Assembly: GCA_013416795.1 (NCBI GenBank)
Contig: RQSC01001375.1
Span: 1-45,718 of the forward strand
Origin: Prasinococcaceae sp. CCMP 1430
Taxonomy: Eukaryota > Plantae > Prasinodermophyta
Direction: 5' to 3'
DNA: 45,718 bases
In this document: piece after piece, positions 9,915 through 44,503 of the stretch
Layout: every line of letters begins with the position of its first letter
Position numbering within the stretch: position 1 is the first letter of the stretch
Translations under genes and position numbers: made by a program
Notes under the pieces: generated by a model
Databases searched by the model: none
Told to the model about the DNA's origin: nothing
What the model saw: the letters and a program-made list of their open reading frames with translations, nothing else

Positions 9915-10109
9915 CAAACTGGGCGGCTCACTCCTCTACATCCCTAGCGCGATCATAATATGGTATAGTGGATGCCTTACGCGCGGGCTGGCCCCGTTCG
10001 CACTTCTCAGCAGTGCCTCTTCTTGCAGCTGGCTTATCTAAGCTAGAGTGGAGAGGGGGTGGAGCTGCTGGGCGTGCGAGCCGCGCTAGCAAGCGCGCTC
10101 CCGCGGAGC

Positions 10110-11332: not shown

Positions 11333-11579
11333 CCCTCCCGGCGCGTCGGGGAGGCTCAACCCCGCGGCTTCCGCCCGAGCCTCGGCCGCGTCCGCACAGA
11401 AGCGGCGGGGTGGGTGGGTGGGGTCGCGTCCCTCCAGCGGTCGGCGTCGGCCCCTTGCCGCCCGGCGCAGTGTGGCGCGCCGCAGCAGCGCGCGCCTCTC
11501 TTCCCCCCGCGCCTCCGACTAACAACAGCCCCCATCAAACGCCATTGCGCCCTCCTCCCAACCTTCGGGGGCGGCCCCG

Positions 11580-12290
11580 CATCCGATTTCGAATTTTCCC
11601 CCGTTTTTTTTTTGAGTTTGGATTTCGCGGATACCCACGACGAAAGCGCCACGCCGCGCGGCCGCGGAGCATTGAATCGCCCCTCTTTTCGCGGCGGCAA
11701 CGCGCGCCGAACCCGCGACGCGGAAAAACGGGCGGTGGTCTTCCTCTTCTTTCCTTTCACCCCCCAGAAAAAAAAATCTAAAAAAAAAACTGCCTTTTCG
11801 GAAGAACGAAAGGGAGAGAGAAGGACGGATCGAAAATCAAAAGTGCCTTCGAAGAATGTGACCGTTGCGGCGGCAGCGTCGGTGCGCCGCGCGCCCAGTC
11901 GTTGCCCCGCATTGGCGGCGGCGTGGCCGGCGCCGACGAGGCGCGGGCGGGCGGCCTCGAACGCGGCTTTTGATCCCAGAACGGCGACGCGGCGTGCGCG
12001 TGCGCGCGTGGGTGTGGGGGGCTGCTTTTTTGAGCTCTCTCGGTCGGCCGTGCGACCGTTCGAATGCTCACCCGTCCCTCTTTCTCGGTGAAGAAAGGCT
12101 CCCGTGGGTACGTTATACGTTTCGATGAATCGTACTGTGCGTTGCGTGGCACTGTGGCGCGCGCGTTGCGTTGGCGTCGCGCGCGCCACAGCGCGCGCGG
12201 CGCAGCGCGCAGCGTTGCGTGCGTGCGCCGCCCGATTATTTTTACAAAATGATTTTAGTCCCATTAAAAAAGTAAATTATACAATTTGTG
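11580..12290. promoter_or_regulatory. Bidirectional promoter between the TOG gene and kinesin-7, with poly(dA:dT) tracts and MSA-like AACGG cores
   Basis: AT-rich island with T and A homopolymer runs of about 9-10 nt. GACCGTT occurs at 11860 and 12054, AACGG at 11727 and 11980. Confidence 0.55.
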
Positions 12291-12320
12291 GGGAGAGCCC
12301 GCGCGGCCCGCTCGCGGCCG

Positions 12321-17270: not shown

Positions 17271-17397
17271 AGAAGAATCATGTACAGTGCCCACAAACAA
17301 TGACGTGATTGGACGACTACGCAGGTGCTGGGTAGGCCCTCTAGCTAGCCGTACAAGCGAGCAGGGCACGAGCAGAGCAGCGCGGCAGTCTCGGGGT

Positions 17398-18678
17398 TCA
17401 ATGCCCTCTACGCGGCACGTACTTGCACACGACGTCGTAAAGCCTACCTCCGAGGCTCTCCGCAACTTCTGGGTGCTTCACCATGCCCAGATTGAGCCTG
17501 TCGCACGTTAGCTCCGCATTCAGGTTGGTCTCGATGCCGCGCCCCATGCCCTCGAGCACGACCAGGTCCGCGTCGGCCGCCGCTTCAGCCAGCTCTCGGG
17601 AAATCTTGCTCAGATCGATGACGGGATCGTCCGATCCGGAGTCTACCACCGATAGCATGCCACATTCGAGCAGACGGTGCACTTGCTCATCGTGCACGCG
17701 CGGCAGCGCGAGCTTGAGCTCCGCGGCGGTCATGTCGTTCAGCGAGGGTGTGTGATTGGAAGCGATCACCACCTTGGTGCCGCGACGGGCGAGTGCTCGG
17801 CAAAGCGGGAGCCTGCAGCGGGCAGGGGAATTTCCGGTCAGCGCGCGTACGCCGCACGGAAGAGCAGCCGCGTCCGAATCGTCAAGCTGAAACAGGCGCA
17901 CTAGCAGGCGCGCCAGATCCGCTGGTGCCACGTACATTCCGAGCCACATGTCCGCACCGGCATTGTCTACGAAGACGATCGCCTTCTTCCAGGGCGTAGC
18001 ACTCGAAGTCCACTTTGCCTTGAACTCATCCAGGCAGTCCACGCACCACGGACGCGGCAGTAGCTTGTCACGCGCGGAGGCGAAGCTCATGTTGCCTGCC
18101 TCGTACATATCCACCGTCGCCTTGGCGCCCAGGTCGAAGATGTTCCCCGCGAAGCACCCGCGGAGGAGCGCCTCGCAATGCGCGGCCTCATCGCCCGCGG
18201 CGGCCAATGCGTCAAGCTCCTCAAGAATCCCTGGCAGCAGTACGAGCGCGCGAGCGTCCTCCTCGGCCTTGACGCTCGCGAACGCGTCAGGGAAGCCAGC
18301 CTCACGCAGGCAGCGATCGCGGATCGCGCAGAGCGACAGGCAGTCGCTCTCACCGCTCGACTCGATGCGCTGGAGCTCGCGCTCGAAGCGCGCGCCAAAA
18401 GACTTGGCACGCGTCGCCGCGGGCTTGAGCTCGCCGGTGGTCTCGCAAGCGATCTCACCGGGCTCGAAGGCATCCGGCACGGCGCCCGAGCACTGCCGCG
18501 AGAGCGACGCGCGCTGCGTCATCGACGCGATCGACGCGCGGAAGACCGCCGTCCACGTGCCCAGCGGCAGCTTGCCCGCCGCATAATCGAACGTCGTCGG
18601 CACGTACGCAGCCGCCTCGCGCAGCAGCGGCAGCGGCACACGCCCACGCGCGTCGGCGCTCGCGTCCGCCGCGCACAT
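17398..18678 (-). CDS. DUF89 damage-control phosphatase (At2g17340/PANK4 C-terminal domain type), 385 aa; exons 18678-17936 and 17812-17398
   Basis: Motifs FAGNIFDLGA, FVDNAGADMWLGM/LP and LVVLEGMGRGIETN. The 123-nt intron has a GTACGT donor, a CTGAC branch point and a TGCAG acceptor. Confidence 0.9.
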   Translation of the reverse strand: MCAADASADARGRVPLPLLREAAAYVPTTFDYAAGKLPLGTWTAVFRASIASMTQRASLSRQCSGAVPDAFEPGEIACETTGELKPAATRAKSFGARFERELQRIESSGESDCLSLCAIRDRCLREAGFPDAFASVKAEEDARALVLLPGILEELDALAAAGDEAAHCEALLRGCFAGNIFDLGAKATVDMYEAGNMSFASARDKLLPRPWCVDCLDEFKAKWTSSATPWKKAIVFVDNAGADMWLGMYVAPADLARLLVRLFQLDDSDAAALPCGVRALTGNSPARCRLPLCRALARRGTKVVIASNHTPSLNDMTAAELKLALPRVHDEQVHRLLECGMLSVVDSGSDDPVIDLSKISRELAEAAADADLVVLEGMGRGIETNLNAELTCDRLNLGMVKHPEVAESLGGRLYDVVCKYVPRRGH

Positions 18679-26730: not shown

Positions 26731-27152
26731 CGCCGTGCCGCCGCCACGAGCTGCGGCCGCCCGCCCGCGCACTCGCGCAGGCCACCCGCACAGTCAGGCC
26801 GGGCGGCGCGGCTCGCCTGGCGCGCTCGTTCGCGTCCCTCCAACCCCCGCACCCCACCCCCACGCATCCGCCCAAGGGTGGGCCGCTTCGTGGGAGGCTG
26901 CGCGAGTGGCACCGCGCGCCCAGGAAGGTGGGGATAGGTGTGTGTGTGTGGGGGGGGGCGCCCACCACTCGAAGGCGGGCGGGCGAGAGCAGGCGCGGGC
27001 CACTCCACCGCGCGCTTGCCCGCTCGCGCCGCGGGCGGGTGCAGCCCGGGTGGGTAGCTGCAGCAGATTCTGCACGGGAGGCCTGCGGCCACTTTGCGCC
27101 CGGCGCTGGCGAAACCGCGCCCCCGCCCGCGGCTCGGCGCCACTCGCCGCAG

Positions 27153-27285
27153 GTCGCCGCAGCTCCCCGGCGACTACGGCTGCGACCCCTTCGGCCTCGC
27201 CAAGGAGGAGAAGAACCTCCTGCGCTACTCCGAGGCAGAGCTCATGCACGCGCGCTGGGCGATGCTCGGCTGGGCCGGCATGATG
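27153..27285 (+). pseudogene. Isolated exon of a light-harvesting chlorophyll a/b-binding (LHC) protein, helix 1 only
   Basis: Translation LPGDYGCDPFGLAKEEKNLLRYSEAELMHARWAMLGWAGMM, flanked by CAG acceptor(s) and a GTGCGT donor at 27286. No transit-peptide exon or helix 2/3 was found nearby. Confidence 0.7.
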
Positions 27286-27467
27286 GTGCGTGCGGGGGCG
27301 TAGGGGCGCGCGGCGGCGGCGCGTACGGCGGGGCGTACGGCGGCGCGTACGGCGGCCTGCTGTACGCGCAACATGCGTGCATGGGCTCTGTGGCGCACTG
27401 GGTACAGGTCGCCGCAGCTCCCCGCCGCCGGCGCTCGCGCCGAAAGCGGGGGCGGGATTCCTCCGGT

Positions 27468-27499: not shown

Positions 27500-27873
27500 T
27501 TGCGCTGCGCGCGCTCGGGGAACGGCACCATTCACCTGCATTTTGACCTCTCGAGCCGCAATGAAAAATCACATCCACAGCAGAATGCGAAGCTCTGACC
27601 CCCCTAAGAGGGAGGGTTAAGGTTTTGATGTGATCTCTTGGCGTTGTTTTGGTGTAGGGTTTGTGCTGTGTGGCAGACCGGAGACGCGGTACGAAGCGGG
27701 TGCGGTGGGGGTGCTGGTGAGCGTCACTCGGCGCCGCAGGACTGCCGCGGGGGGCGGGGGAGGGGGGTGGCTGCCGCCGAGAACGGACCGAGCGGGGCGC
27801 GTGGTGGCGCCGAGGCTGACGCTGCGGCCGCCGACACGCGCATGCGGTGGACGCGGGCGCGGGCGCGGGTGCG

Positions 27874-28548
27874 ATGAGCGCCATGACAGAGTACGAGCGC
27901 CAGCGAGACGAGATCATCCGCCGCAACCGCGCCAAGCTCGCCGAGCTCGGCATCAAGCTCGCCTCGGAGCGCCTGCGGGCGCTCGCGCCGCCGGCCGCCG
28001 CGCCGAAGCCGAGGGCGGCTGTGGCCGCCGATCGCAAGCGGGCACGCGAGGCAGCCGCGGCCGCCGGCCCGGAGCGCCGCTCGGCGCGCGTGCGGAAGGC
28101 GCGGGGGGAGGTCCTCGAGGGCGAGGAAGCAGAGCTCGTGGAGCTGGAGGAGGATGAGCCGCGCGCTCAGGGCGTCCGCAAGAGTGGTGATAGGGTGGGC
28201 GGGCAGGTAGGCGCATCGCGAGCGGGCCTGTCATGGGAGGAGCGGCTCGCGGAGGTCAAGCTGGACCATTTGATCGACCTGTCTTCCGACGACGCAAAGT
28301 TCGTGATCCTCGGCAGCGCGGGCAAGCACTACGTAGTGACGCTCTCCGACGAGCGCCACACGTGCCAGTGCATGGACTTCCGCACGCGGGGCAAGCAGAG
28401 GCCGTGTAAGCACATTCGAGTGTCGCAGCAAGAGCTGGGGTTGGAGCAGGGTGCGCTGAAGGGCGGCGGCTGGCGTGCCGCCGTCGAGGCGACGCTCAAA
28501 GAGGACCTGGACAGATTGAATGCCGACCAAGAGGCGGTGGCCGCCTGA
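27874..28548 (+). CDS. SWIM zinc-finger protein, 224 aa
   Basis: YVVTLSDERHTCQCMDF...RPCKHI gives the CxC...CxH SWIM pattern. The N-terminus carries an EYERQRDEIIRRNRAKLAELG helix. Confidence 0.8.
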   Translation: MSAMTEYERQRDEIIRRNRAKLAELGIKLASERLRALAPPAAAPKPRAAVAADRKRAREAAAAAGPERRSARVRKARGEVLEGEEAELVELEEDEPRAQGVRKSGDRVGGQVGASRAGLSWEERLAEVKLDHLIDLSSDDAKFVILGSAGKHYVVTLSDERHTCQCMDFRTRGKQRPCKHIRVSQQELGLEQGALKGGGWRAAVEATLKEDLDRLNADQEAVAA

Positions 28549-28771: not shown

Positions 28772-29839
28772 CTATTGATAGCTGCCATTAGGCGACACAG
28801 ATTGCTTGCCGGCGGCGGCTGGCTGGCTGGCGCCGCTGCGAAGCACGTAGACGCTCGTGGTTTCGATGAAGCTTGGGAAAGCGGCTGTTAGCTCTCGAAG
28901 CACGTCGAGAGTCATCGGGGCCAGGATGTGCGGCTGCCTGCTGCAGAGCTGTTGCTCGCGGAAGAGAACGCGGGCAACAGCGCGCGTCAGCGCCGGCGGG
29001 TGTACGCAGACGCGCGCGCAAGATCAGATGGTCGGAGCGGGAGTCATGCGCGCGTGCGGTCGAAGGCGCAAGGCGCGCACCTGCTTCCACTCCTCCATGT
29101 GGATCACGCCGTCACGGGCCAAGTCAGCCTGTTCAAAGGTCTCGTCGACCAGGCTGTCCATGGCCTCCATGGGGAGGGTGAGCCCGCTCTTCTCCTGCAC
29201 GAGGCCTTTAAGCATCGAGCGCACCTCGTCTGGCTCGATGACGCCATTTCCCTTCAGGTCGTACACACTGAACAGGAACTCGCTTTTGCTCTCCTGGTCC
29301 GCTCGGGGGTGAAAGACCTGCAGGCCCCGCACGAAGGCGTCGAACGATAATGTGCCTTCGCTCTTTGAGTCCAGCAGGTCAAACACCCTGTCCGCGAAGA
29401 GGCTCTTTGTACCGCGTGAGTCCGCGCGCGCGCTACCGGGCCTCCCGTTGCTGAGTCGCCCGTTGCCATTGCCGTTGCTCAGCGGCTTCCGCCCTGCGTG
29501 ATGAGCCTCCACCTCGTCGACGGCAGCCAAGGGGGCTCCCGGGCTGTTGGACGACGCCGGCCCGCCCCCCGCTGCCCCTTTGAAGAGCGCCTGCTTGAAC
29601 TCATCGCGGTGCATGAGTCCGTCGACATGAATGGTGTTCGCGGCCGCCTCGTGCATCGTGCGCAGCGCCTCGACCTCGGGCAGCGAGAAGAGCGTCTCGC
29701 GCGAGAGCTTGCGATCCTGTTCGCGCGTCGTGTGCAGCGCGCCGCTCGCACTCGACGCCCGTGCTGCCCTCGCGCTACCTGCACCCGCTGGCTCGCCCAC
29801 AACTGCCGGCCGAGCGCAGCACACGAACCACTTCGCCAT
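28772..29839 (-). CDS. CBL: Calcineurin B-like calcium sensor, 311 aa; exons 29839-29081 and 28948-28772
   Basis: Motifs LSRETLFSLPEVEAL, DGLMHRDEF, SLFADRVFDL, VFHPRA and four EF-hand regions. Removing a 132-nt GT-AG intron restores the C-terminal MTLDVLRELTAAFPSF (FPSF motif). Confidence 0.9.
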
Positions 29840-30063
29840 GACGACAGAGCTGTCCCTCTTCCCGCTTGGGTTGGCCTGCCCCGCGACGCGGAACGGACGC
29901 CGCCGGCCGCCGCGGCCGCCGCAGCCGCTGCCATCCCTGCCGCAGCCACGGGCGTACGCCGCCTGCGCTGTGGCGCCCCGGCGCTCGCACCGCGCCAAAC
30001 CCTCATCAAATTGCACGTTTGAAACTAACCCTGTGCCCATACCTTAATGTGAACCCTAACCCC

Positions 30064-30071
30064 AAACCCTA
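30064..30071. promoter_or_regulatory. Telo-box AAACCCTA (other perfect copies at 18799, 21451 and, reversed, 27655)
   Basis: Exact matches to the plant telo-box in upstream regions. Confidence 0.5.
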
Positions 30072-30409
30072 CCAGCGACCACCAACTGTGCGCCGAGCGC
30101 ACCGAGCCCACCACAGTGCGCGCGCGTGAGGGAGAGCGCAGCGCGCGCCCTGTGGGGGCGGTGGCCACACGGCGCGCGCCCGAGGCTGCCCGCGCAGACG
30201 GGGCCTTCCGGTGGGGGAGAGGGACGCGCACCGCTGCGCCCGGTCGTCCGCGCGCTCGTGTGCGTGTGCCGCGCGCCCCTCGCCGCGCGCTGGCCGCGCC
30301 GCTGCCCCGCCTCTGACTGACTGCTATGTGTCGTGCGCTTCCTTCGAGGCGGCGGTGGCGACCCTTCGGAGCACCCACAGCCGCACGTCCGAAATCGAAG
30401 CCGCCTTCC

Positions 30410-31410
30410 AATGTGCCACAAAAACGAAGGCCAAAATCAAAGTAAAAAAAAAGGGCGATGCGATGCGTTGGGTTTGACGAAGAAGCTTTTCGGGAGGGGC
30501 TGCGCGGCGACGTTCCACGAAGGCAGGGGGGCCGAAAGTGAAGGGTGAAAAGCACAATCAAAATCAAATTAAATCAAAACAAAAACAAAATCATGGGATG
30601 CGATGCTTTCGGTTTGGCGAGGTTTTTTTTTTTGCAACGAGGCGAAGGGAAAGGGGGCGACACAAAAAAAGTGCGCGTGTGCCGGCAGCCCCCGGCGCGC
30701 GCGCGCGCTCCAGCTGGGGCCGGGCGGCGGCGGCTGTGGGACCCGCGGACCACACCACAGCGCTGCTGAGAGCGGGAGCCGCGCGGCGACAGGGACGCTC
30801 GGCGCCTTGGGGTGGGGGCAGGGAGGGGGGTTGGGGGTGGTTGGGCGGAAGCGGGGAAGGGGTCCTGTGGTGGGCGGCGAAGCTGGGACCTGCGGGGCAC
30901 AGCGCGAGCGCGAGCGCGAGCGCGAGCGGCGCGCCCGCGAGGTTGAGGTTGGGGGCTCAGCGTTACGGTATCGGATTTCCTTTTCGCCCGGCGGTCCACA
31001 CGTGGTCCGAGTGCAAAATGACTCCAAAAAACGCAGGTGCGCGCAAAACTTCACCCGTAAAATTCAAACACATCAAAATGCATTGGGTGGCCTCTCCCGG
31101 TTGTTGCCGACGCGGGCCCTCGGGGAATCCGCTGCTTCAATCGGAAGAGGCCGCGACTGTTCGTTTTCGCGTGTTGAGAAATTTAGATCGCTTATGCGCT
31201 GTTTTACACATTCTTTGTGATATATGTGGTTACGGAATTGTGCGATTTCGGCGCGGCCGGGCGGAAGACGGCCCCAACAGCCGGCGCGTGCGCGCGTGGA
31301 CGCGCTGCTGCGGCTGCAAACGAAGGCGGTAATTTCGATGCCCGTGAAACGGTCTGATAATCATATCTGAATATTAAAAGCGCGGTTTGATAGTATTTTA
31401 ATTCGAAATC
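30410..31410. promoter_or_regulatory. AT-rich bidirectional promoter region between CBL and CIPK
   Basis: Two AT-rich islands (about 30410-30670 and 31010-31410) with A/T homopolymer tracts between divergent ATGs. Confidence 0.5.
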
Positions 31411-31510
31411 CGGAGAGCTATGGCGCCCCTCTGCGCGTGCACGCACACGCATGCGGGCGCCACAGTGCGGGCCGCATGCGCCCGTGGGGCCTGGCCGGCG
31501 GGGGAGGGGG

Positions 31511-33187
31511 ATGGCGCGTGGGACGGTGCGAGCGGTGGCGGTGATGCTTGCGGCGTCGGCGGCGGCGATGGTGATGGACCGCGAGGGCTGGCTGGCCGCC
31601 GTGGGCGGCGCGCGCGACGCGCTAAACTTCAACAACAGCGCCACGAGCGGGGAAATCACGCTAGGGCCGCGCGCGCATGCGCGGCTGGGGCGCTTCGAGC
31701 TCGGCCGCACGCTGGGCGAGGGCGCCGCTGGCAAGGTGCGCTACGCCGTGGACTCGCAGGACCCGGCGCGGACGCCGTACGCCATCAAGGTGCTAGACAG
31801 AGAAGCGGTCGACAGGCAGGGCATGATGCCCTGCATCAAGCAGGAGATTCGTGTCATGCGCGCGCTCAGGCACCCGTGCATTGTCAGGCTGCACGAGGTG
31901 CTGGCGAGCCAGAAGAAGATATACCTGGTCATTGAGCTGGTCACCGGCGGCGAGCTGTACGATCGCGTCGCGCACGACGGCCATTTGAATGAGGTCAAGG
32001 TGAGGCGCTACTTGCAACAGCTCGTGGACGCCATCGACTACTGCCACTCAAAGGGAGTGTACCACAGGGACCTCAAGCCCGAGAACATCTTGCTGGATAC
32101 TTCATCCGATACCGTCAAAATCGCCGACTTCGGGCTGGCGGCGGTGGTAGACCCGCACGCGCCCGCGAAGGAGCGCATGCTGCGCACGCTCTGCGGCAGT
32201 CCGAATTACGTCGCCCCGGAGGTCCTGCGCGAGGAGTCGTACGACGGCGCAAAGGCTGACGTGTGGGCTCTGGGCGTGATCGCGTTCATGATGGTGTCTG
32301 GCAGGCTCCCTTTCCATTCCGAAAACATGCCAGAGCTCTACAGGCAGATCAACAAGGCCGAGTATCGCGTGCCAGGCTACGTGAGCAACGGCATGCGCTA
32401 CCTGCTACGGAAGGTATTGGAGCCTGATCCGTCGCTGCGCGCCACAATTGCCGAGGTGCGCAACGACCCGTGGTTCCTCAAAGGCGGCTATGTGCGACGC
32501 GAGCCGCTGCCAGACCCCTCGCAACTCAGGCGACTGCGGTCCCGCCCGCCAGCAGCCACCGCGGGCAGGATCTCGTCGCTCATGCACCAGGTGACCATCA
32601 GCGACGTCCCCCGCGTTGAGGAAGAGAAGTCGACCGCTTGGATATCGGTGGGCGGCCGTGACGGCTCTGCGTCGGACTCCGCAGCGACGAGTGACAGCAG
32701 CGAGCCTGGCACCCCTCGCGTGCGACGCGTCCACTCGCTCAATGCCTTCGAGCTGATCGCCATGGGGAGCATGGGGTTGGATCTGAGCGCAATGTTCGAA
32801 AAGAGAAAGGACGTTGTGGGACGCCACACGCGTTTCTGCGCAGAAGCGGGGGTTGAAGACATTCTGAGCGCCATCACGAGCGCCGCAAGCGACATTGGCG
32901 CGGTGGCGACCGACAGCAGCGACGACGCCGAGGAAGGCGGGGAGGCCGCCGCTGAGCTGCGCCTCGATTGGACGGGTGCGCGTGGCCCCGCTGCCATGCG
33001 CTGCGAGGTCTTCCGCCTCGCACCCGGCATCCACATGTGCGACTGCTGCCGCATTCGCGGCGACGGCTTCGAGGTGCACTCGATGTACACCAAGCTCGTG
33101 GTCGCGCTGGGCGACCTGGTGCTGAAGAACCGAGACGACGTCAGGGCCTTCGACTCGAACGTGCGCGTAGACCGACTGATCTCGTGA
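31511..33187 (+). CDS. CIPK: CBL-interacting protein kinase (SnRK3) with NAF domain, 558 aa; start uncertain
   Basis: Kinase motifs LGRTLGEG, HRDLKPEN, DFGL and CGSPNYVAPE, followed by the NAF motif LNAFELIAMGSMGLDLSAMF and a PPI-like RHTRF. Confidence 0.92.
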   Translation: MARGTVRAVAVMLAASAAAMVMDREGWLAAVGGARDALNFNNSATSGEITLGPRAHARLGRFELGRTLGEGAAGKVRYAVDSQDPARTPYAIKVLDREAVDRQGMMPCIKQEIRVMRALRHPCIVRLHEVLASQKKIYLVIELVTGGELYDRVAHDGHLNEVKVRRYLQQLVDAIDYCHSKGVYHRDLKPENILLDTSSDTVKIADFGLAAVVDPHAPAKERMLRTLCGSPNYVAPEVLREESYDGAKADVWALGVIAFMMVSGRLPFHSENMPELYRQINKAEYRVPGYVSNGMRYLLRKVLEPDPSLRATIAEVRNDPWFLKGGYVRREPLPDPSQLRRLRSRPPAATAGRISSLMHQVTISDVPRVEEEKSTAWISVGGRDGSASDSAATSDSSEPGTPRVRRVHSLNAFELIAMGSMGLDLSAMFEKRKDVVGRHTRFCAEAGVEDILSAITSAASDIGAVATDSSDDAEEGGEAAAELRLDWTGARGPAAMRCEVFRLAPGIHMCDCCRIRGDGFEVHSMYTKLVVALGDLVLKNRDDVRAFDSNVRVDRLIS

Positions 33188-33675
33188 TCGACCGCGCGGC
33201 GGCGCTCGGCCGCTCCTCGCGCTAAGTTTGTGAACATGGTCTGATGTAAACGTACTTTTGCGACTACGCCACTGGCGCCATTCTCAACTAGAAGATGGCG
33301 CTCGCCGCGGCAGAACATAGTGGCCGCGCGCCGTGGCCAGCGCTAACCCGTGCACGCGTGCGACGCGCCTTGGCATTCTTCGCAATAGTCATTCAACTGA
33401 AGACACTTTGATCGGCGCGCGGCCCCTTGTGCGCCATCTAGCTAGGTGCTTCTCTGCGCCCGCCCACTTGAATTGTCCTCTCTGCGTTTCGCCATCCCTT
33501 GTCGCTTCATCGCTCGCTCGGCGCTCGTAGCTTTTATCGCCTCTGCCTCTTGGGCACGGCGCCAATGCTAGACTGCTAGTACTTTGCAGTTGGGGCCTGA
33601 CGCTCATGCGCAGCCCATTGGGCTCCTGGCTACGTAAAAGACATACTTGGATCCTCATACTCGCAAACATGCGCG

Positions 33676-36600
33676 CTAGCCCTCCGACGGTTCGGGCTCC
33701 GAATCAGCCTCAGGCTGCTCAGCGTCGAGGTTGGAGTCCTCTGAGTCGAGGTCCCCGGGCTGGGCTTCTGGCTCCGCCTCGGGTGGGGGCGCTTCCTCAG
33801 CGGGCTCCTCTTCGGGCTCCGCCTCAGGTGGGGGCGCTTCCTCAACGGGCACTTCTTCGGGCTCCGCCTCTGGCGGGGCCACAGGCTCAGGAATGGGCTC
33901 GGATGGCGGCGGGGACTCGGGCTGAGGACCAGGTGGTTGTGGTACAGGTCCTTCCGTCGCCGGCACAGGCGCCGTCGTCATCGGCCCTTTCGTCAAAGGT
34001 CCAGGTTCGGGTGCAGTGTCCACTGGGCATGAGTCGACAGCGCAGCAATAGCAGTCGACCTTGCCGTCGCACGTGTCCTGCTGGCACTGGCCCTCGTACC
34101 ACACGCAGCCGTTGGGCACACAGTCAAAACACGAAGTGTAATCCCCACACTTGGGTGGTAACGGGCAGGTGCCTTCGCAGCAGTAGCAGTCGTCTTTGCC
34201 GTCGCACGTGTCCTGCTGGCACTGGCCGTTCCACCACACGCAGGCCTCCTGCGGCGTGCACTCGCCGCACGTCGTGTAGTCGGCGCAGACCGGCGCCGGG
34301 CAGGTGCCTTCGCAGCAGTAGCAGTCGTCTTTGCCGTCGCACGTGTCCTGCTGGCACTGGCCGTTCCACCACACGCAGGCCTCCTGCGGCGTGCACTCGC
34401 CGCACGTCGTGTAGTTGCTGCACGTGTCCGCGACACCACACGTGTTTGGATCGCTCTTGCAGTTCGGACTGTCTGCGCTGCATGGCCCGTCGCTGCACTT
34501 CCCGTCCGTGTAAACGCATCCCGCCCCTGTGCATTCAACGCACCCACTGGCGCCCAATTCGAGACGTGCTGTCAGAATGCTGCATTGGACACCACCGTCG
34601 CACTCCTCAATTGCTTGGTAACACTGTCCCTGCTCGGGCGCACACGGCCCGTCCTGGCAAAGTCCTTGCCACCACGAGCACGCCCCGTCGCCCAGGAAAG
34701 CACAGTCCTCACAAGTCAAGTAGGCCTCGCATCCGCTTGGCATCGGGCAGGTGTCGTAAGTCGTGCTACAACTCGTTTGAGAGGGTGTGCACCCACCCTC
34801 CTGGCAGGTCCCTGTCTCTGCGTCCCAGGAGCACCCGCTGCCTGCATCTTCCTCGCCGGGGTTGAGCTGGCGCACCGACTGTAGGGCCGTGGTACCGACG
34901 CAAGTACGACACTCGGTGCTCTGCGAACACAGAACAGGGCACATGTCGGGAGTGTCGTGGCACTGGACGCCTGTTACGTTGCACTCAGCGCCGGCCCTGC
35001 ACTCTCCAGTCGAAGGATACCAAGCGCATCCCAATGACGAGGCGGCACACGGAGTGCATGACGTATAGTCCTCGCATACGTCCTGCACAGGGCAGGTGCC
35101 AGGTGCCTGGTAGCAGGCCCCATCGTCTGGTCCGCAAGGCCCGCCCTGACACGTCGCGTTGCCTGTCCACTTGCAGCCGAGTCCTGCGCCCACGCACTGG
35201 CCGCAGTCGTAGATCAGAGCACACTCTACGGGGCACGCCACTGGACTTTCGCGGCATTGCACGTCCGGAGGGCAGGGACCTTGCTCACACGCACCGTCCA
35301 CCCATCGGCACCCTTGCTCACTCCCTGCGCAGCTGGGGCAGCTAGTGTGGTCTTCACACGCAACCACCGGGCACGCCATCCAGTCCGTGTAGCATGAGCT
35401 GTCCGACGCGCCACAAGGGGTGGACGAGCAGGTCTCGTTGACGCTGTGCCATGCGCAGCTTGTCGGCAAGGAAGGATCTGTGCACGATCCGCAGTCGTAG
35501 TGCTGGTCACATGGCTTGGCCGGGCACTCGAGGTCCGAGTCAGGACCCACGCAGCCAGGCAGGCCGTCACACTCCAAGCCGGGCTGGCAAGTTTGCGTCT
35601 CGCCGTCGTCTGTGTAGATGCAGCCGTCCAGATTCAAGCAAGTGTCACAGTCAAAGGCTGTGTTGCATGCGATGGCATCTGGGTCGGACGGGGGCCCATA
35701 CGCCGGGCAAAGCGCCGACTCGTCCGTGCACAGGCCCATACTCAGCGCCGTCGCAGAGCACGCGCCCACTTGGCACACACCAGAGATGTAGGAACATCCG
35801 GTGTCGCCGGCGGTGCAGGATTCGCAGTCGGTGTACGATGAGCAGACGCTGTCCGTGCAGACGTCTGCGTAGCAAATTTGCTCGCAAACTGTCTGACATA
35901 TGGTGGTGCAGTCATCATGTGGGCAATACGGACACTCAGCCACACATTTGGTGATGCACTGTGTGGAGCAATGCGGCACGCAGACGACTTCGTAGCAAGT
36001 GACGTCCGGGCACTCCTCGGGCGCGAAATAGCACCCGGAAATTCCTGGTGCGTCCGGTGCGCCCGGTGCCCCTGGTGCGCCTGGTGCGCCCGGTGCCCCT
36101 GGTGCGCCTGGTGCGCCTGGTGCGCCTGGTGCGCCTGGTGCGCCTGGTGCGCCTGGTGCGCCTGGTGCGCCTGGTGCGCCTGGTGTGCCTGGTGTGCCTA
36201 TGGCGCACTCCTCCACCGAGACGCAGCCTGGTGAGTCCTGCGCTATTGAGTATCCGCACCCGGGCGTGCGCACGCACTCGGCGCAATCCAAAACCTGATC
36301 GCAAGGGGGCGGACACGTCGAGGCGCTGTCGTGGCACGACGGCTGCTCGACGCCGCATTCCTGATCCTGACACACGCTCGCGATCCCGTCCCATGAGCAA
36401 TTCGACGAGGCTCTCGCGCACGAGAGGCAGTCCGTCCAGTCACCGCACACGGGCACGGGGCACTCGTCCTCATTGCCGTAGCAGGCGGTCTGGTCACTGC
36501 CACACGGGCCGTCCTGGCACGCGCCGTCATACCACGAGCAGTCAAGCTGCGAGGAGGCGCACGTGTCGCACGCGGTGTAGTCCTGACAGCTCGGTGCGGG

Positions 36601-37878
36601 GCATTCCTGCCCGCTGTCCTTGTCGTAGCATCCTTCCGTGTCCGCGTCGCACGGCCCTGCGCTGCAGATACCCTGATAGTAATTGCAGCCGCAGCAGCCG
36701 ATGGTTGCGTTGGCGCATGAGACGCAGCCGGTGATGTCGCCGCACTCTTTGACATCGCACGCCTGCGGGTCGCTGTAGCAGTCCTGCTCACCTTCAGAGC
36801 ACGCCCCGGCGTCCTGGCAAAGCCCCTGCCGCCATATGCAGGCAGAAGAGTTGCGTGCCGTGGTGCACGTGTAGCAGTCGGTGTGGACGTCGCACCCTTC
36901 TACCGGGCAAGTACCCTCTTCGCTGTAGCAGTCCAAGCCGTTGTCGCATACCCCGGGCTCGCAGGCACCCGACGACCAACGGCAACCCGCCGAGGAGGCC
37001 ACGCACGACTCGCATGCAAGGAAGTCCTTGCACACGTCCGGTTCGCATGTCTCCGGGATCGTGTGGCATTCGGTCTGCGTCGGCTTGCACGGGCCGGGTC
37101 GGCAGGCGCCCTCGAACCACCGGCACAAGAACGGAGTCACGCACGAGCCCGACGACGGCTCAAGGCACGGCACCGACCCGTTGGTGTTCGACGACGCGCA
37201 CGAGAAACAGTCGAGATAGTCGGAGCAGGCGGGCGGCGGGACGGGCGGTGCCTTGGTTGGCGGCTCGCACTCATTCGCATTGAAGGTCGTGTAGCACTCC
37301 TCGCCGACGAGCGGACACCCGACCCTGCACTCTCCGCCTTGCCACCCACACCCAAAAACTGCCGCACAGTCGGCGCACGCCGAGTATTGCGAGCAGTCGA
37401 GGTCCGGCGGGCACGCGCCGTTGTCGAATTGGCACGCTTCAACGTTGCACACGCTGTCACACTCGGAGTCAACCTCCCAGCCGGGCGCGCACCCAGGGGC
37501 GCAGCCATTCACGCATACGTAGCTATCCCATGCACAGGCGGGCGTGTTGCACTCCGGCTGGCACGTCGTATCGAGGCGGTACTCGGGCAGACACCCAATC
37601 TCACAGAGGCACGCGCCGAGGTCATAGCCACATGCGGAGGTGTCGCACGCGGGGTCACAAATCTCGCTGACGAGCAACTCGGTCGTGCACCCACCGCTCA
37701 TGCACTCCGCCAGGTTCTCAGGTGCCGGAGCGCCGGGCGGAACGACGACCGCGTGGGCACACCCTGGAGCGTTCGCCGCCAGCGCGCCCAGCAGTAGCAG
37801 CGCCGCCGCGAGCGGCGACGGTCCCGCCGCGCGCGACCGGATGCTCGCGCCGAGTGGATGCGAGCGCTCTGATGCCAT
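33676..37878 (-). CDS. Secreted Cys-rich modular protein, 1400 aa: signal peptide, 3 LNR-like repeats, 20 PSI-like repeats, a Gly-X-Pro segment and a Pro/Glu tail
   Basis: Single ORF with the hydrophobic leader PLAAALLLLGALAANA. LNR-like CDPACDTSACGYDLGAC units are followed by repeats of the form C-x5-C-x2-C...C-x-W...C. No TM segment is evident. Confidence 0.85.
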   Translation of the reverse strand: MASERSHPLGASIRSRAAGPSPLAAALLLLGALAANAPGCAHAVVVPPGAPAPENLAECMSGGCTTELLVSEICDPACDTSACGYDLGACLCEIGCLPEYRLDTTCQPECNTPACAWDSYVCVNGCAPGCAPGWEVDSECDSVCNVEACQFDNGACPPDLDCSQYSACADCAAVFGCGWQGGECRVGCPLVGEECYTTFNANECEPPTKAPPVPPPACSDYLDCFSCASSNTNGSVPCLEPSSGSCVTPFLCRWFEGACRPGPCKPTQTECHTIPETCEPDVCKDFLACESCVASSAGCRWSSGACEPGVCDNGLDCYSEEGTCPVEGCDVHTDCYTCTTARNSSACIWRQGLCQDAGACSEGEQDCYSDPQACDVKECGDITGCVSCANATIGCCGCNYYQGICSAGPCDADTEGCYDKDSGQECPAPSCQDYTACDTCASSQLDCSWYDGACQDGPCGSDQTACYGNEDECPVPVCGDWTDCLSCARASSNCSWDGIASVCQDQECGVEQPSCHDSASTCPPPCDQVLDCAECVRTPGCGYSIAQDSPGCVSVEECAIGTPGTPGAPGAPGAPGAPGAPGAPGAPGAPGAPGAPGAPGAPGAPGAPDAPGISGCYFAPEECPDVTCYEVVCVPHCSTQCITKCVAECPYCPHDDCTTICQTVCEQICYADVCTDSVCSSYTDCESCTAGDTGCSYISGVCQVGACSATALSMGLCTDESALCPAYGPPSDPDAIACNTAFDCDTCLNLDGCIYTDDGETQTCQPGLECDGLPGCVGPDSDLECPAKPCDQHYDCGSCTDPSLPTSCAWHSVNETCSSTPCGASDSSCYTDWMACPVVACEDHTSCPSCAGSEQGCRWVDGACEQGPCPPDVQCRESPVACPVECALIYDCGQCVGAGLGCKWTGNATCQGGPCGPDDGACYQAPGTCPVQDVCEDYTSCTPCAASSLGCAWYPSTGECRAGAECNVTGVQCHDTPDMCPVLCSQSTECRTCVGTTALQSVRQLNPGEEDAGSGCSWDAETGTCQEGGCTPSQTSCSTTYDTCPMPSGCEAYLTCEDCAFLGDGACSWWQGLCQDGPCAPEQGQCYQAIEECDGGVQCSILTARLELGASGCVECTGAGCVYTDGKCSDGPCSADSPNCKSDPNTCGVADTCSNYTTCGECTPQEACVWWNGQCQQDTCDGKDDCYCCEGTCPAPVCADYTTCGECTPQEACVWWNGQCQQDTCDGKDDCYCCEGTCPLPPKCGDYTSCFDCVPNGCVWYEGQCQQDTCDGKVDCYCCAVDSCPVDTAPEPGPLTKGPMTTAPVPATEGPVPQPPGPQPESPPPSEPIPEPVAPPEAEPEEVPVEEAPPPEAEPEEEPAEEAPPPEAEPEAQPGDLDSEDSNLDAEQPEADSEPEPSEG
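34163..34415. repeat. Two identical 118-nt copies (34163-34280 and 34298-34415), period 135 nt
   Basis: Compared base by base. A third diverged copy lies at about 34030-34145. Confidence 0.9.
36055..36198 (-). repeat. 9-nt coding minisatellite encoding 16 Gly-X-Pro triplets (2 GTP + 14 GAP)
   Basis: The plus strand reads (cctggtgcg)n with synonymous variants. Confidence 0.92.
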
Positions 37879-39009
37879 GGGCTCGGCGTCTCTCGGCTCA
37901 AGCACGCGATGTCCCGTTGATGCAGGCTCCGCCGCAGCCGCCGCGCAGCACGTCTGCTTGCTGCGCCCGCTGTGCCGCGCCCCGCTTGGCGCGCCCGTGC
38001 GCGCCGACGGGTGCGCTGCAGCATTGCGTGTGCGCATGCGTTTTCCCTGCGCGCGTCGCGAGCGCGCGCGCAGCAGCAGCGCGTCGCCGCGCGCACCGCT
38101 GACGCACGACCTGCCGTATCAAATCCTAACCACCAGCGCGCGTGCCCGCACAGCGCCGCGCCGAGATTTGCACGCGTGGCGCGCTGCCGGCGGCCCGCCG
38201 CCGCCGCAGCGCTGGCCAATTCAGGGCGCAAGCTCGCACGCATGCTCACGAACGCGCGCGCTCCCGCGCCCGCATGCGCGCACTCACACGTACGCGCACG
38301 CACGCACACCACAGTCACACACGGCGGCGGGCTCTCTCCCATGGGACCCGCCGCCGCCTCTCGTGTCGCGGAGGGCGCACGTTGCAACGTTGCACCCACA
38401 CGTTTGGCCCGCATCGTTGACTGAGCCCTGCGCGCGTCCCCACGTTGGCGGCCGTATCGGGCGCGATTCGCACCGGACAGCGAATTCGCACGAGCGATGT
38501 CAGTCCATCATTATTAGTTAGGGGCGTTGCTCGTACTCGTGGCGCCAAATCCGAATCGAGATTGGACTGCCCCGTTCGAGTTTTCACCTCCGTATCGAGA
38601 TCGTGGGCGTGCAGCTCCTTTCGTTTGATATGGCCATCAAAACGCACGTGCGCGAGCGCGCGCGCGCGCCCGGCGGCTCGGAGCGGCGGGCGGGAGGGGC
38701 GGAATTCGATTTGATGGGGGAGACTTCAAGGTCGCAGTGCGCACGAGGTATGACACGAACCCTAAAACCCGATAAATGCGCGGTGTTTGGTTTCGGTTAC
38801 GATCTTGCATCAAAATGCATAGGGGAGTGCGTCGCGCAGGCAAGGCTAGGTCGCAGTGCTCGCCGCTGCGGGTGTGCCACACCTCCTCCTCCGCAAGCCT
38901 CCCGCCTTCCCTCCCTGGCCTGGGCGCGTCGCGACCGCGCGGCCGCCCTCGCGCCGCGCGCCCCCTCAGGGGGCCTCCGGAGACCTCCGGAGGAGCGCCG
39001 GCCGTGCCC

Positions 39010-41166
39010 ATGGAGGAGGGTGAGATCGGCGGTGAGGGCGAGCGCGGGCGCGAGAGCGAGCGCCGCGGCGGGGAGTACTCGGCGCCGCCGCCGCGCCGGC
39101 GTAGCCCCGGGCGCGGCCGCGACCGCGAGCGTGACTACGGCTACGACCGGCGCGACCGCGGCTTCGATCGCGGCTTCGATCGCGGCTTCGATCGCGGCTT
39201 TGAGCGCGGCAGGGGCCGCGAACGGGACCGCGAACGCGAGCAGCGAGGGGCGCCGCGCACGGTGCGTTTCGCAGACGGCGGTGGTCGCGACGAAGGCGCG
39301 CGCACTGGGCCGCGGCGCGATGCCTCCTCCGCCGGCGCGAGAGAGGAGGCACCGCACGCCCGCGCATCCAGCGGCGGATCCGACTCAGATGATCCTGGCA
39401 GCGGGGGCGCGACGCCGCAATTGCTCGAGGACCAGGCCCTCGAGGAGGAGCGGCAGATCGCCGAGCGGCGGCGGCGGCGCGCGGAGATGATGGAGAGGCA
39501 TCGCGCCGCGCAGGCGGCTGCCGCACCCACAGCGACCGCCACCGGCTCTGCTGCTGCAACGCCGTCCACAACTGCCGGCGACGCGATGGCGCCCGCCGCA
39601 GGCCCAGTCCCCGCCGCTCCCCCCGCTCCCGCCCGCGACCCCGCCCAAGCCCCCCCCCCCACTGCAGGCGCTGCTCCGACCGAACCCGCTCCCTCGTCCG
39701 ACGACGAGGCTGACATGTTCGCCGACGACTTCGAGGAGACGGTCGCCGGTCGCGCAGCGGCCGCGGGCGGCGGGGTGGAGGGCCTGAAAGACTCGTGGGA
39801 TGACGCCGAGGGCTACTACAACTTTCGCGTGGGGGAAATGCTCGATGGACGCTACGAGGTGTACGCCAATTACGGCCGCGGCGTGTTCTCAACGGTGCTG
39901 CGCGCGCGCGATCTGGCCCCTGCCCAGCAGCAGGGGCAGCAGCAGCAGCAGCAAGAGCAGCCATCCGAGGTCGCCATCAAGGTGATCCGCGCGAACGAAA
40001 CGATGCGCAAGGCTGCACAGCTGGAGGTGGCCATCGTGCGCAAATTGGCTGGCGCAGACCCCGAGGGTCGCCGCCACTGCGTGCGGCTCTTGGCGCACTT
40101 TGAGCACCGCGAGCACACTTGCATGGTGTTCGAGCCGCTCGCGCGCAACCTGCGCGAAGTGCTCAAGAAGTTCGGACGCAACATCGGGCTAAACCTCGGC
40201 GCGGTGCGAGCGTACGCGCACCAGCTGCTCATCGCGCTGAAGCACATCTACAATTGCGGCGTCATCCATGCAGGTGCGCGACGCCGGCTGCCTCAGGCCC
40301 GCTGGCGGTGTGCCCGCGGTCCTGGCACCCTGACAGACGCGCAGGCACCCGCACAGGACTCTCGCATCGCTCGAAGCTGACTGTCGCGCCGCTCGCTCTC
40401 GCCAACAGATATCAAACCGGACAACGTGCTCGTCAACGAGCGCCACACCACGCTCAAGCTGTACGTCCGCGCGCGCCAGCGCAGCGCACGCTCTGCACCG
40501 CCGCGCCGCGCCTCATGCGCCGACCGCGCGCGCGAAGCGATGCAGCGCTGACCCCCCCCCCGCTCCTCCTCCGGGCGCCGCAGGGCCGACTTCGGGTCGG
40601 CGATGTTCGCTGGGCAAAACGAGCGCACGCCCTACCTCGCGTCGCGCTTCTACCGCGCGCCGGAGGTCATTTTGGGCATGGCGTACGGCGCGCCGCTCGA
40701 CATCTGGGCGACGGGCGCGTCGCTTTTTGAGCTGTACACGGGGCGCATCCTCTTTCCTGGTGCCAGCAACAACGCCATGCTCAGGCTCATGATTGAGCTC
40801 AAGGGACCGCCCTCCAAACGCATGCTGCGAAGCGGCATCTTCGCGGACAAGCACTTCGACCTCGAGACGGGCGCTTTCGGTGCGGTGGGCGAGGATCCGG
40901 TGACCAAGGAGACCGTGGTACGCATGATGCAGACCGTCAAGCGCAAGGACGACATCGCGCGGCGGATCAAGGCCGGCGGCGGCACGGACGAGGCCTCGCG
41001 CATGAGTCGTGCCTTCGCCGACCTGCTCGAGCGCATGCTCGTGCTCGACCCGGAGAAGCGCATCACGCCCGCCGAGGCGCTCAAGCACCCCTTCATCACG
41101 GGCGACCTCGGAGGAAGCGGCGCACCCGCCGGCGGTGGCGGCGGCGCCGGCGCGCACCACGGGTAG
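39010..41166 (+). CDS. PRP4K: Pre-mRNA splicing kinase PRP4, 632 aa; exons 39010-40273, 40409-40460 and 40584-41166
   Basis: RD/RE-rich N-terminus and motifs WDDAEGYY, GRGVFSTV, HA/DIKPDN, L/ADFGSA and TPYLASRFYRAPE. Two GT-AG introns restore the frame. Confidence 0.95.
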
Positions 41167-42042: not shown

Positions 42043-44503
42043 ATGAGGGCGCAGAAGGTCTCGACGCACAGTGGCACTGGGCCGCCCGTGCCCGACCACG
42101 TGAAGCGGCCTCCCGCCGCCGGCGGTGTCGCGGGCGTCGCGTCCAACATGCCGGGGCTGAGCTCGTCGACGGAACGCCGCCGCAGCGTCGAGCTCGACCT
42201 CAACAAAAAGGTCTCGCGCGACAAACGCATGCTTGAGGTGCTCAATAGCCGCGTGGGGTTACCCAACGCGAAAGCGGAGGACGGCAAAGAATGGCTGGGT
42301 GGCCCAGGTGAGCAGCCGAGCGGCGGCGGCATGCGCGCGCGCGCGCTCCACTCGCGCGACCTCGCTCGTGCGCGTGCGTGCGCCGCCCGCCCCGCCCACG
42401 ACCATCTGCGAGAGCTTGCGGACTGACTCACTCGCGCGTGCGCGCACTCCTCCGCCTCTCTGTCTCTCTGTCTCTTTGTCTCCTCTCCCTTCCTCCCTCC
42501 CTCCATCCCTCCCTCTCTCTCCCTCTCTCTCTCTCGTGTGCGCGCGCTTGGCCCTGTACCCGCCTTCCATCCCCCCCCCCCCCAAAACACACACACACCA
42601 CCGGCTACGTCCTGCTACTATTGCGCACGATCTCACGTGCCCTTCAGGAGACGAGCTGAGCGCGTCGGCGCTGCGCATCAGCCTCGAGCGCCTGAGCCGG
42701 CGGCCCTCCCTGGAACGCAAGTCGTCCGAGCTGCGGTCGCCGCCTTCGCTCGGGGGCTCGGCGCGCACGAGCCGCCGGTCCTCCCTGGAACGCCATTCGC
42801 CGCCTTTGCTCGGGGGCTCAGCGCGCACGAGCCCTTCGGGCTCGGCGCGCACGAGCTTCGACTCGTCGGAGCGGCGGCCGGGTGCGCTGGCAGCCCTCGC
42901 GGCGGCCGGCGCCGCGCAGCGCCTGAGCCGTCGGTCCTCCCTGGAACGCCAGTCTTCCGAGCTGCGGTCGCCGCCTTCGCTCGGGGGCTCGGCGCGCACG
43001 AGCCCTTCGGGCTCGGCGCGCACGAGCTTCGACTCGTCGGAGCGGCGGCCGGGCGCGCTGAAAACCCTCGCGGCAGCGGGCGCCGCGGCGGCGGGCGTGG
43101 GCGACAGCGATACGGACAGGCTGAGCGCCAAGGCGCCCTCCATGAAGGGCCTGGCGAGTTGGCGGCAGAGCGTCGCGCGCGTGCGCCGCCTGTCGGTGGC
43201 GTCCATCCAGAAGGCGCCGTCGCCGAAAGCGGCGGCGGCGTCGGCGGCGGGGGCCGGCGGCGACGGCGCCGACATGGCGTCGTCGCCCGTGCGAAACCCC
43301 GGGGCGCACGGCTACGCCGCGCCGGGCGAGGGGCCGCCCACCGGGGCGAGGCGCTCCGTCGAGAGCATCAGCTACGACCGGAGCGACGAGACGCTGCACA
43401 GCACGCTGGAGGGCTCGGTGGCGGGCGGGCGCATCGGCCTGAGCTGCGCGGTGGTCAGCCGCCGCGGCCAGGAGGCACACTCGTGGAAGAAGAACAACCA
43501 GGACGCCTACCTCGTCGAGTGCGACGGCGCGGCCGCGCTCGTGGGCGCCTTCGACGGCCACGGGAGCAACGGGCACGCCGTGAGCGCCTTCGTGCGCGAC
43601 TACCTGCGCGGGCGCGTGGTGGAGCTCTGCGGCGGCGACGGCCTCGCGCACGAGTGGGAGCCCACCGTCACCTCGCTCTTCGCCCAGTGCGACCAGGAGC
43701 TCAAGCGCTCGACCATCCAGCAGCTCGACGTCAGCGGCACGACGGCCGTCATCGCCGCCCTGCACGACAACCTGCTGCACCTCGCGTGGGTGGGAGACTC
43801 GCGCGCCATGGTCGTGCGCAAGGGCGCGGAGGGCGGGCGCGCCGTCGCGTACGTCACCGAGGACCACAAGCCCGACTCGCTCGAGGAGAGGCAGCGCATC
43901 GTCTCCAACAACGGCAGGGTGGACCACCTGGTGGACGAGCAGGGCCGGAGGGTGGGCCCGCCGCGCGTCTTCCTCAGGTTCGCCTGGACGCCCGGCCTCT
44001 CCACCTCGCGCGCGTTCGGCGACATGCTGGCGCACGAGGTGGGCGTGGTCGCGCAGCCCGACTGCCACACCATCGCGCTGACGGGCGACGAGGAGTACGT
44101 GCTGCTGGCGTCGGACGGCGTGTGGGAGTTCATGGACGAGCAGGCCGTCATCGACGCCATCGCCGGGGAGGGCAGCCTGGAGGGCGCTGCCGACGCGGTG
44201 GTGGCGGAGGCTCGCAAGCGGTGGAACGAGGAGGAGGAGGTGGTGGACGACATCACCGCGGTGATCCTCAAGCTCGGCTTCTCCGACGACTTCAAGGAGT
44301 GGGCCGGGCGAGCCCCCGACGGCGGCGCGCGCGTCGCGGCCGGCGGGGCGGGGGTGGTCGGGGCCAGGCTGAGCGCGCTCAAGCTGGGGGAGAGGAGCGA
44401 CGCGCAGGGGAGCCCCACCGCGTCGCGCCCCGCGCAGCCGGGCTCGCCCATCTGGTCCGAGCTCAAGAGGAATCGGAGGAGCGCGCCGGCGGGGGGCGAG
44501 TGA
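42043..44503 (+). CDS. PP2C-family protein phosphatase with a long Ser/Arg-rich N-terminus, 706 aa; exons 42043-42307 and 42648-44503
   Basis: Motifs NQD, FDGHG, SGTTA, GDSR, DHKP, SRAFGD, LASDGVWE and DDIT. The intron has a GTGAGC donor and a TTCAG acceptor and contains a CT microsatellite. Confidence 0.9.
42691..43060 (+). repeat. Interleaved internal duplications in the PP2C N-terminal coding region (about 80-nt units, periods 171 and 231 nt)
   Basis: 42811-42889 nearly equals 42982-43060, and 42691-42772 nearly equals 42922-43003. Confidence 0.8.

Follow-up and report, generated by a model that had tools for sequence, protein, structure and literature searches.

The stretch of DNA analysed here (positions 1 to 45,718 of contig RQSC01001375.1, assembly GCA_013416795.1, from Prasinococcaceae sp. 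CCMP 1430; hereafter the window) reads like that of an intron-poor eukaryotic alga, with about 68% GC and a green-type chlorophyll a/b-binding exon at 27094-27303. Between positions 28772 and 33187 it carries a CBL gene on the minus strand and a CIPK gene on the plus strand, the calcium sensor and the protein kinase of one signalling module, transcribed away from each other. An initial annotation of this DNA had proposed this arrangement, a CBL with an FPSF motif and EF-hands adjacent to and divergent from a NAF-domain CIPK, and Pfam domains, matches to solved structures in the PDB and a splice model all agree with it. The locus is made up of the following features.

28772..28933, minus strand: last exon of the CBL gene, including the stop codon; encodes PHILAPMTLDVLRELTAAFPSFIETTSVYVL..., with the FPSF phosphorylation motif within it (placed by the splice model and the uninterrupted open reading frame of the relative P0136)
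28934..29080, minus strand: CBL intron of 147 nt, GTGCGC...GCAG (GT..AG), placed by the splice model
29081..29839, minus strand: CBL exon 1, 253 aa; it starts MAKWFVCC and carries EF1 to EF4, the first two EF-hands being separated by a low-complexity insert of about 55 residues
29840..31450, no strand: shared divergent spacer, GC-rich with AT-rich islands and highly polymorphic between strains
30930..31663, no strand: segment of about 740 nt unique to this assembly, which contains every candidate CIPK ATG of the strain as well as the second set of AT-rich islands (delimited by alignment A1 and 14 cluster N-termini)
31451..33187, plus strand: CIPK open reading frame of at most 578 aa, with the kinase domain at about 31694-32476 and the NAF domain at about 32732-32896, followed by a regulatory region like a phosphatase-interaction domain

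The domains of the open reading frame (ORF) at 31451-33187 identify it as a genuine CIPK. Residues 82-342 form a CAMKL-type kinase domain that matches the Pfam Pkinase model over its full length (1-263 of 263; E 9.8e-67), and residues 428-482 score 40.9 bits against the NAF model PF03822 (cut-off 25; E 2.3e-10), with the NAF/FISL sequence SLNAFELIAMGSMGLDLSAMFE. The regulatory domain is also present, residues 426-565 aligning to residues 311-441 of CIPK23 with 56.9 bits. Among solved structures the best match is AtCIPK23 (E 2e-104), followed by SOS2 (E 1e-98), with AMPK or Snf1 at about 1e-63. Named database matches are Klebsormidium and land-plant CIPK23 at about 40% identity, and the protein falls into a cluster of environmental sequences, drawn from TARA and Logan assemblies, that share more than 90% identity with it. 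Because a search with the regulatory domain returned only this cluster and that of a second lineage, described below as the sister lineage, the two CIPKs appear to form an isolated clade, with no second close CIPK of the species in the databases, an indication that the gene may be single-copy.

The two exons of the CBL gene span 28772-29839, and the spliced product has 306 residues. The splice model is supported because the closest relative, the intron-less sister-lineage CBL P0136, has an uninterrupted ORF, EEWEKLCQRQPHILAPMTLDVLRELTSAFPSF, that runs through the FPSF motif. Splicing joins EEWKQ to the last exon, which encodes PHILAPMTLDVLRELTAAFPSF, including the C-terminal FPSF (PFPF) motif in LTAAFPSFIE that is also found in P0136; retention of the intron would lead to a stop at 29024-29026, ahead of the motif. 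Environmental alleles conserve the start codon at 29839 (MAKWFVCC...), and the minus-strand ORF 29024-30040 matches EF-hand_7 (E 8.9e-11), EF-hand_6 and EF-hand_1 in Pfam. The protein aligns with algal and plant CBLs from EF1 to EF4 (alignment A2), and its best matches among solved structures are AtCBL2 (E 4e-33) and SOS3/CBL4 (E 8e-30), against 1e-13 to 1e-16 for calcineurin B and about 1e-11 for NCS proteins. Compared with the cluster representatives, it is 100% identical to P0135 and 54% identical to P0136. On these sequence comparisons, the gene at 28772-29839 is a genuine CBL.

Several features of this CBL are nonetheless atypical. One hallmark of CBLs is an extended first EF-hand loop of 14 residues, usually with Ser at position X (PMC4990929). 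The EF1 region of the window CBL, ANTIHVDGLMHRDEF, can be aligned gap-free with the extended loops found in algal and plant CBLs, but position X is Ala or Asn, not Ser. Land-plant CBLs have 23 aa between EF1 and EF2, and those of other species have 19-24 aa (PMC4990929); the insert of about 55 residues after ALFK departs from this fixed spacing, although it alters only the length of the linker and leaves the EF loops intact; the sister lineage shares it. A long low-complexity insert also occurs at the same place in the algal CBL of a metagenomic lineage at 70% GC (P0304; L010, 10001-10951), a protein that begins MGLCASS... and ends in a YPSY tail. Finally, CBLs carry an N-terminal lipid-modification motif (MGCxxS/T) or a tonoplast-type Cys motif; the N-terminus MAKWFVCC has no Gly2, and the sister-lineage CBL may begin MGGVMCC. 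The conserved N-terminal Cys-Cys suggests membrane anchoring by S-acylation.

The neighbourhood is reproduced outside this assembly. An independent TARA scaffold of the same species (L001, 14.9 kb) is 98-99% identical to the window over 19885-41131 and keeps the CBL on the minus strand and the CIPK on the plus strand as neighbours, so that the misjoin the initial annotation had allowed for is excluded at the species level.

The spacer between the two genes had been described as containing AT-rich islands and no credible gene, and both observations stand. The islands, at 30000-30100, 30400-30600, 31000-31100 and 31300-31400, have 45-53% GC against about 68% overall. No tRNA, no Rfam match above noise and no credible gene or conserved ORF was found in the spacer; long GC-rich ORFs such as 30538-31332, considered as a hidden gene, were rejected, being conserved in neither frame nor length in L001. 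The first AT-rich island also holds two 76%-identical copies of a short element, at 30444-30480 and 30584-30620, 140 nt apart, each with an A-rich tract followed by GATGCGATGC-TT-GGTTTG-CGA. Relative to L001, no part of the locus is less conserved than the spacer, which shows large indels and an identity of 96% compared with 98-99% in the flanking blocks. L001 is without window positions 29928-30092 and has a gap of Ns at the AT-rich island 30400-30665, where another contig (L004) ends.

One of these differences affects the start of the CIPK. In L001, about 130 nt encoding the N-terminus MAGGRRRASGRAPSAPP stand in place of window positions 30930-31663, and all 14 environmental variants that reach the CIPK N-terminus begin with MAGGRRRASGRAPSAPP. 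The segment in the window supplants the environmental start codon and the first 17 codons, and its divergence ends exactly where ...cacgctag meets GGCCGCGC. It may be an insertion or an unrecognised 5' intron. The ORF stays open through it, with in-frame ATGs at 31451, 31511, 31544, 31568 and 31574; thus the CIPK of this strain is probably intact with a strain-specific 5' end, and which of these codons is the true start is uncertain. The distance of 1671 nt between the two ATGs given in the initial annotation is correct if the CIPK starts at 31511, a position that lies inside the assembly-only segment. Start-to-start distances are 1.6-1.7 kb in the window, about 0.76 kb in TARA scaffolds of the same species and about 0.25 kb in the sister lineage. 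For bidirectional promoters a distance of about 1 kb or less between the starts is usually assumed, and the spacer of the window strain is longer than this.

The sister lineage was recovered through its CBL. An exhaustive search of 1.8 billion cluster representatives returned one close relative of the window CBL, P0136 (54% identity), and then ordinary CBLs at 48% or below. The contigs of this lineage (L005/L006 and L097-L103; 70% GC) come from several TARA and other marine samples, and all of them have the same gene order: a NAD-binding gene, CIPK on the minus strand, CBL on the plus strand and a Cupin_8 gene on the minus strand. The head-to-head pair is present in at least eight assemblies, and the divergent orientation with no intervening gene is common to the window, L001 and L005/L097-L103. 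Read from the DNA, the sister-lineage CIPK begins MTRKESRQRQVARLGRFE, which an intron separates from LGRTLGEG; MGGVMCCAAPA is the probable start of the CBL and leaves about 250 nt between the two ATGs. Identity to the window proteins is 52-54% for the CBL and 57-73% for the CIPK. No counterpart of the NAD-binding or Cupin_8 gene was found anywhere in the 45-kb window by tblastx or Pfam. The CBL-CIPK pair has been kept together while the surrounding genes changed, and simple block synteny fails to explain its retention, because the flanking genes differ between the two lineages.

A second adjacency was found in the streptophyte Klebsormidium nitens, which is reported to have a single CIPK (PMC10953335). 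On DF237136.1 (L093, 10001-18058), the CIPK (P0003; plus strand, 10001-14117) and a CBL (minus strand, 15433-18058) are convergent, 1.3 kb apart and with no gene between them. The neighbour is a 220-aa EF-hand gene whose exons encode CBL sequence and a YPSF tail, which identifies it as a genuine CBL.

How much these cases mean depends on what chance would produce. If a genome of about 25 Mb holds roughly 7-10 thousand genes (our assumption), with a single CBL and a single CIPK among them, two such single-copy genes would be adjacent by chance with a frequency of about 2-3e-4, and divergently adjacent with about a quarter of that. The window alone was found by a scan of very many windows and, given this multiple testing, proves little. 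Klebsormidium came from a test planned in advance, where chance adjacency is about 1e-4 to 4e-4 per genome and about 0.005 cases are expected across some 20 lineages. Because of this adjacency, and because the pair was retained in the sister lineage despite different flanks, linkage of CBL and CIPK is more frequent than chance would give, and plainly not obligatory.

We lean, with some reserve, towards a model in which the locus brings together both halves of a canonical CBL-CIPK calcium-decoding module as divergent neighbours, with linkage favoured in some lineages for co-expression or co-inheritance. By analogy with the established biochemistry of the family, the Ca2+-loaded CBL would bind the NAF motif of the CIPK and relieve its autoinhibition, and the double cysteine near its N-terminus (MAKWFVCC in the window, probably MGGVMCC in the relative) would probably serve to recruit the kinase to a membrane. 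The CIPK would then phosphorylate the Ser of the FPSF tail of the CBL as well as downstream targets. Linkage might help to keep both partners balanced in expression through an upstream region common to them, which is short (250 nt) in the sister lineage; alternatively, it might aid co-inheritance of a sensor and a kinase that would each be useless alone. Whether the pair is functionally co-regulated we regard as about an even call.

A number of observations weigh against this model. The first group concerns the spacer. Its length varies about seven-fold across genomes, and other sequence stands in place of the ancestral CIPK start in this strain. Comparison of the 250-nt spacer of the sister lineage with those of the window and L001 revealed no conserved non-coding motif, only GC-rich low-complexity matches, and a CRE-like perfect TGACGTCA in the spacer of the relative occurs nowhere in the window. 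The wide variation in spacer length, the tolerance of indels that replace the CIPK start and the lack of a conserved motif all speak against a tightly built bidirectional promoter, and the operon-like unit under one bidirectional promoter proposed in the initial annotation is at present a conjecture. Nor can a shared promoter be the general reason for linkage, because the Klebsormidium pair is convergent.

The second group concerns other lineages. Here the CBL served as the probe, since a NAF domain beside it is diagnostic. JGI metagenomes, scanned by pattern, yielded 80 CBL loci, of which 44 measure 5 kb or more. When tblastn with three CIPKs was combined with NAF and kinase hidden Markov models applied to all six reading frames, no NAF domain turned up outside the window species and the sister lineage. 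About 17 other CBL lineages had no NAF domain or CIPK-like kinase in the DNA available near the CBL. After clustering at 80% identity, 12 of these have about 10 kb on both sides and five have less or a one-sided flank; linkage over more than 10 kb is invisible in such loci, and some of these lineages may have no CIPK at all. The unlinked lineages include several gene-dense, abundant picoeukaryotes at 58-61% GC. Among the CBL loci with no kinase within 10 kb on either side are L007-9 (59% GC, gene-dense and very abundant), L010 (70% GC) and L011/12 (47% GC), and the CBL on Logan contig L094 is also unlinked. A liverwort CBL locus and a Sphagnum CIPK locus have no partner nearby. Synteny, a check that the initial annotation had suggested, holds in part: the pair is head-to-head in the sister lineage and adjacent but convergent in Klebsormidium, whereas some 17 further lineages and two bryophyte loci are unlinked. 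We infer that linkage is lineage-specific or repeatedly lost, not universal to the CBL-CIPK system.

The same scan produced one candidate that did not survive. L074 was rejected as a divergent CBL/kinase pair, since an ORF of 968 aa separates the two genes and the kinase shares only 31-36% identity with CIPKs. In a side observation, metagenome proteins of compact eukaryotes (L105/L106, 3001-10824; P0137-P0145, P0165, P0169 and others) of 1600-3070 aa carry 8-14 tandem CBL/calcineurin-B-like EF-hand modules; P0137 is encoded by a single intron-less ORF of 7.8 kb.

The alternative that fares best, although we consider it unlikely, is that the two genes became neighbours by chance in a compact genome, a neutral event, and that the pair persists in the sister lineage only because local gene order was inherited, without selective or regulatory significance. 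The prevalence of unlinked loci among the sampled lineages fits this explanation, as do a spacer that varies in length and sequence and tolerates large indels, and a scan of so many windows would be expected to yield some striking neighbour pairs. It is harder to reconcile with flanking genes that the window and the sister lineage do not have in common, and with a second adjacency in K. nitens despite the low chance expectation.

Less probable still is that CBL and CIPK began, in the green-plant ancestor at least or earlier, as a linked two-gene cassette that survives head-to-head in an isolated prasinophyte-grade clade, was rearranged in Klebsormidium and was broken up elsewhere. An ancestral cassette would explain the joint loss of the two genes and their patchy distribution, and linkage does occur in two very distant green lineages; moreover, a single pair is what most algae possess, and across eukaryotes the two genes are either both present or both missing (PMC4990929, PMC4030171). 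However, the two orientations differ, divergent in one case and convergent in the other, and one simple inversion does not interconvert them. With most sampled lineages unlinked (some 17 besides these), the ancestral arrangement that the initial annotation had considered possible is disfavoured, the comparison by name covering Klebsormidium and the two bryophyte loci.

That misassembly brought the two genes side by side, or that the supposed CBL is in truth a calcineurin B or NCS protein, is effectively refuted: AT-rich spacer islands do break or gap metagenome assemblies, and JGI auto-annotation does label homologues "phosphatase 2B regulatory subunit", but the pair is joined on an independent scaffold of the same species and gap-free on at least eight sister-lineage contigs, and the FPSF tail and a similarity to CBL2 and CBL4 far above that to calcineurin B are specific to CBLs, with an EF1 loop that aligns with the extended CBL type.

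A favoured linkage, as in the model towards which we lean, would bear on questions that are already in print. CBL-CIPK is a central calcium decoder of plants; how it evolved, why its two partners strictly co-occur and why it is so patchily distributed are matters under debate, in which lateral transfer has been discussed as a possibility (PMC4990929, PMC4030171). Linkage would supply a concrete, testable genomic mechanism for the joint retention or loss of the two genes, and an ancestral cassette, if real, would account for their joint gain, retention and loss across eukaryotes. Conserved linkage in a minimal system, probably with a single pair, would also be a natural unit in which to study balanced expression of partners, and functional studies in algae could use the linked pair as a compact cassette of two genes that brings its own control region.

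Other features surround the pair in the window. Directly downstream of the CIPK, a 5.4-kb stretch at 33360-38740 contains an ORF of 1453 aa that is rich in Cys and has a collagen-like Gly-Ala-Pro repeat (PF01391, E 4e-9). It is absent from the 98-99%-identical L001 and is thus a strain-level presence/absence variant. Further along, about 5-11 kb downstream of the CIPK, are a weak protein-kinase ORF (38776-40380, plus strand) and a PP2C phosphatase gene (42233-44503, plus strand; PF00481, E 1.2e-35). Plant CIPKs bind PP2Cs; as a third member of the module, however, the phosphatase gene 9 kb downstream was rejected, as neither it nor the kinase ORF is beside the pair in the sister lineage, and their position is probably coincidence. 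By the 3' end of the CBL gene, a 233-aa ORF (27847-28548, plus strand) has a CxC...CxH pattern (CQCMDFRTRGKQRPCKHI) reminiscent of a SWIM zinc finger, with no Pfam match at E 0.01.

CBL-CIPK pairs of algae and protists are well described and usually occur singly, as in Ostreococcus, Bathycoccus, Naegleria and Trichomonas (Beckmann 2016, PMC4990929; Kleist 2014, PMC4030171). The window module resembles them in being apparently low-copy in a unicellular alga, and the invariant NAF motif and conserved CBL hallmarks are present in both. Neither paper mentions genomic adjacency of CBL and CIPK, and no published description of the linkage was found in the literature searched, in keeping with the initial annotation, which was aware of none. 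Moss literature on "cognate pairs at genomic loci" was rejected as prior art, since it concerns paralogue pairs from whole-genome duplication and not CBL-CIPK adjacency. In K. nitens, whose CIPK-CBL adjacency we likewise found no mention of in the literature searched, a CBL adjoins the CIPK as in the window, and this CIPK is the only one of its genome; unlike those of the window, the genes are convergent and intron-rich and have no shared promoter. The metagenomic picoeukaryote CBL loci that we recovered differ from the window in having no linked CIPK.

Head-to-head gene pairs that encode subunits of one complex, such as histone H2A-H2B, place interacting partners divergently around a short shared upstream region. 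The sister-lineage spacer of about 250 nt resembles this type of arrangement, the likeness of the CBL-CIPK pair being one of gene layout only. In the activation loop, the window CIPK has Ala where SOS2 has Ser156. The closest solved structures come from the Arabidopsis modules SOS3(CBL4)-SOS2(CIPK24), CBL2-CIPK14 and CBL-CIPK23 (PDB 2ehb, 2zfd, 1uhn, 1v1f, 4czt, 4d28). In common with these, the window encodes a sensor that has four EF-hands and an FPSF tail, together with a kinase of the CAMKL type in which a regulatory domain follows the NAF motif. Its CBL differs from those of Arabidopsis in the EF1-EF2 insert, in starting with MAKWFVCC instead of the MGC myristoylation/palmitoylation start and in having no Ser at EF1 position X. 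The CBL and CIPK families of land plants are large and dispersed, whereas the window genes are physical neighbours. The linkage leaves the accepted view of how the module works unchanged. The two genes are ordinary new members of known families, and their conserved linkage is, as far as can be told, an undescribed organisational variant.

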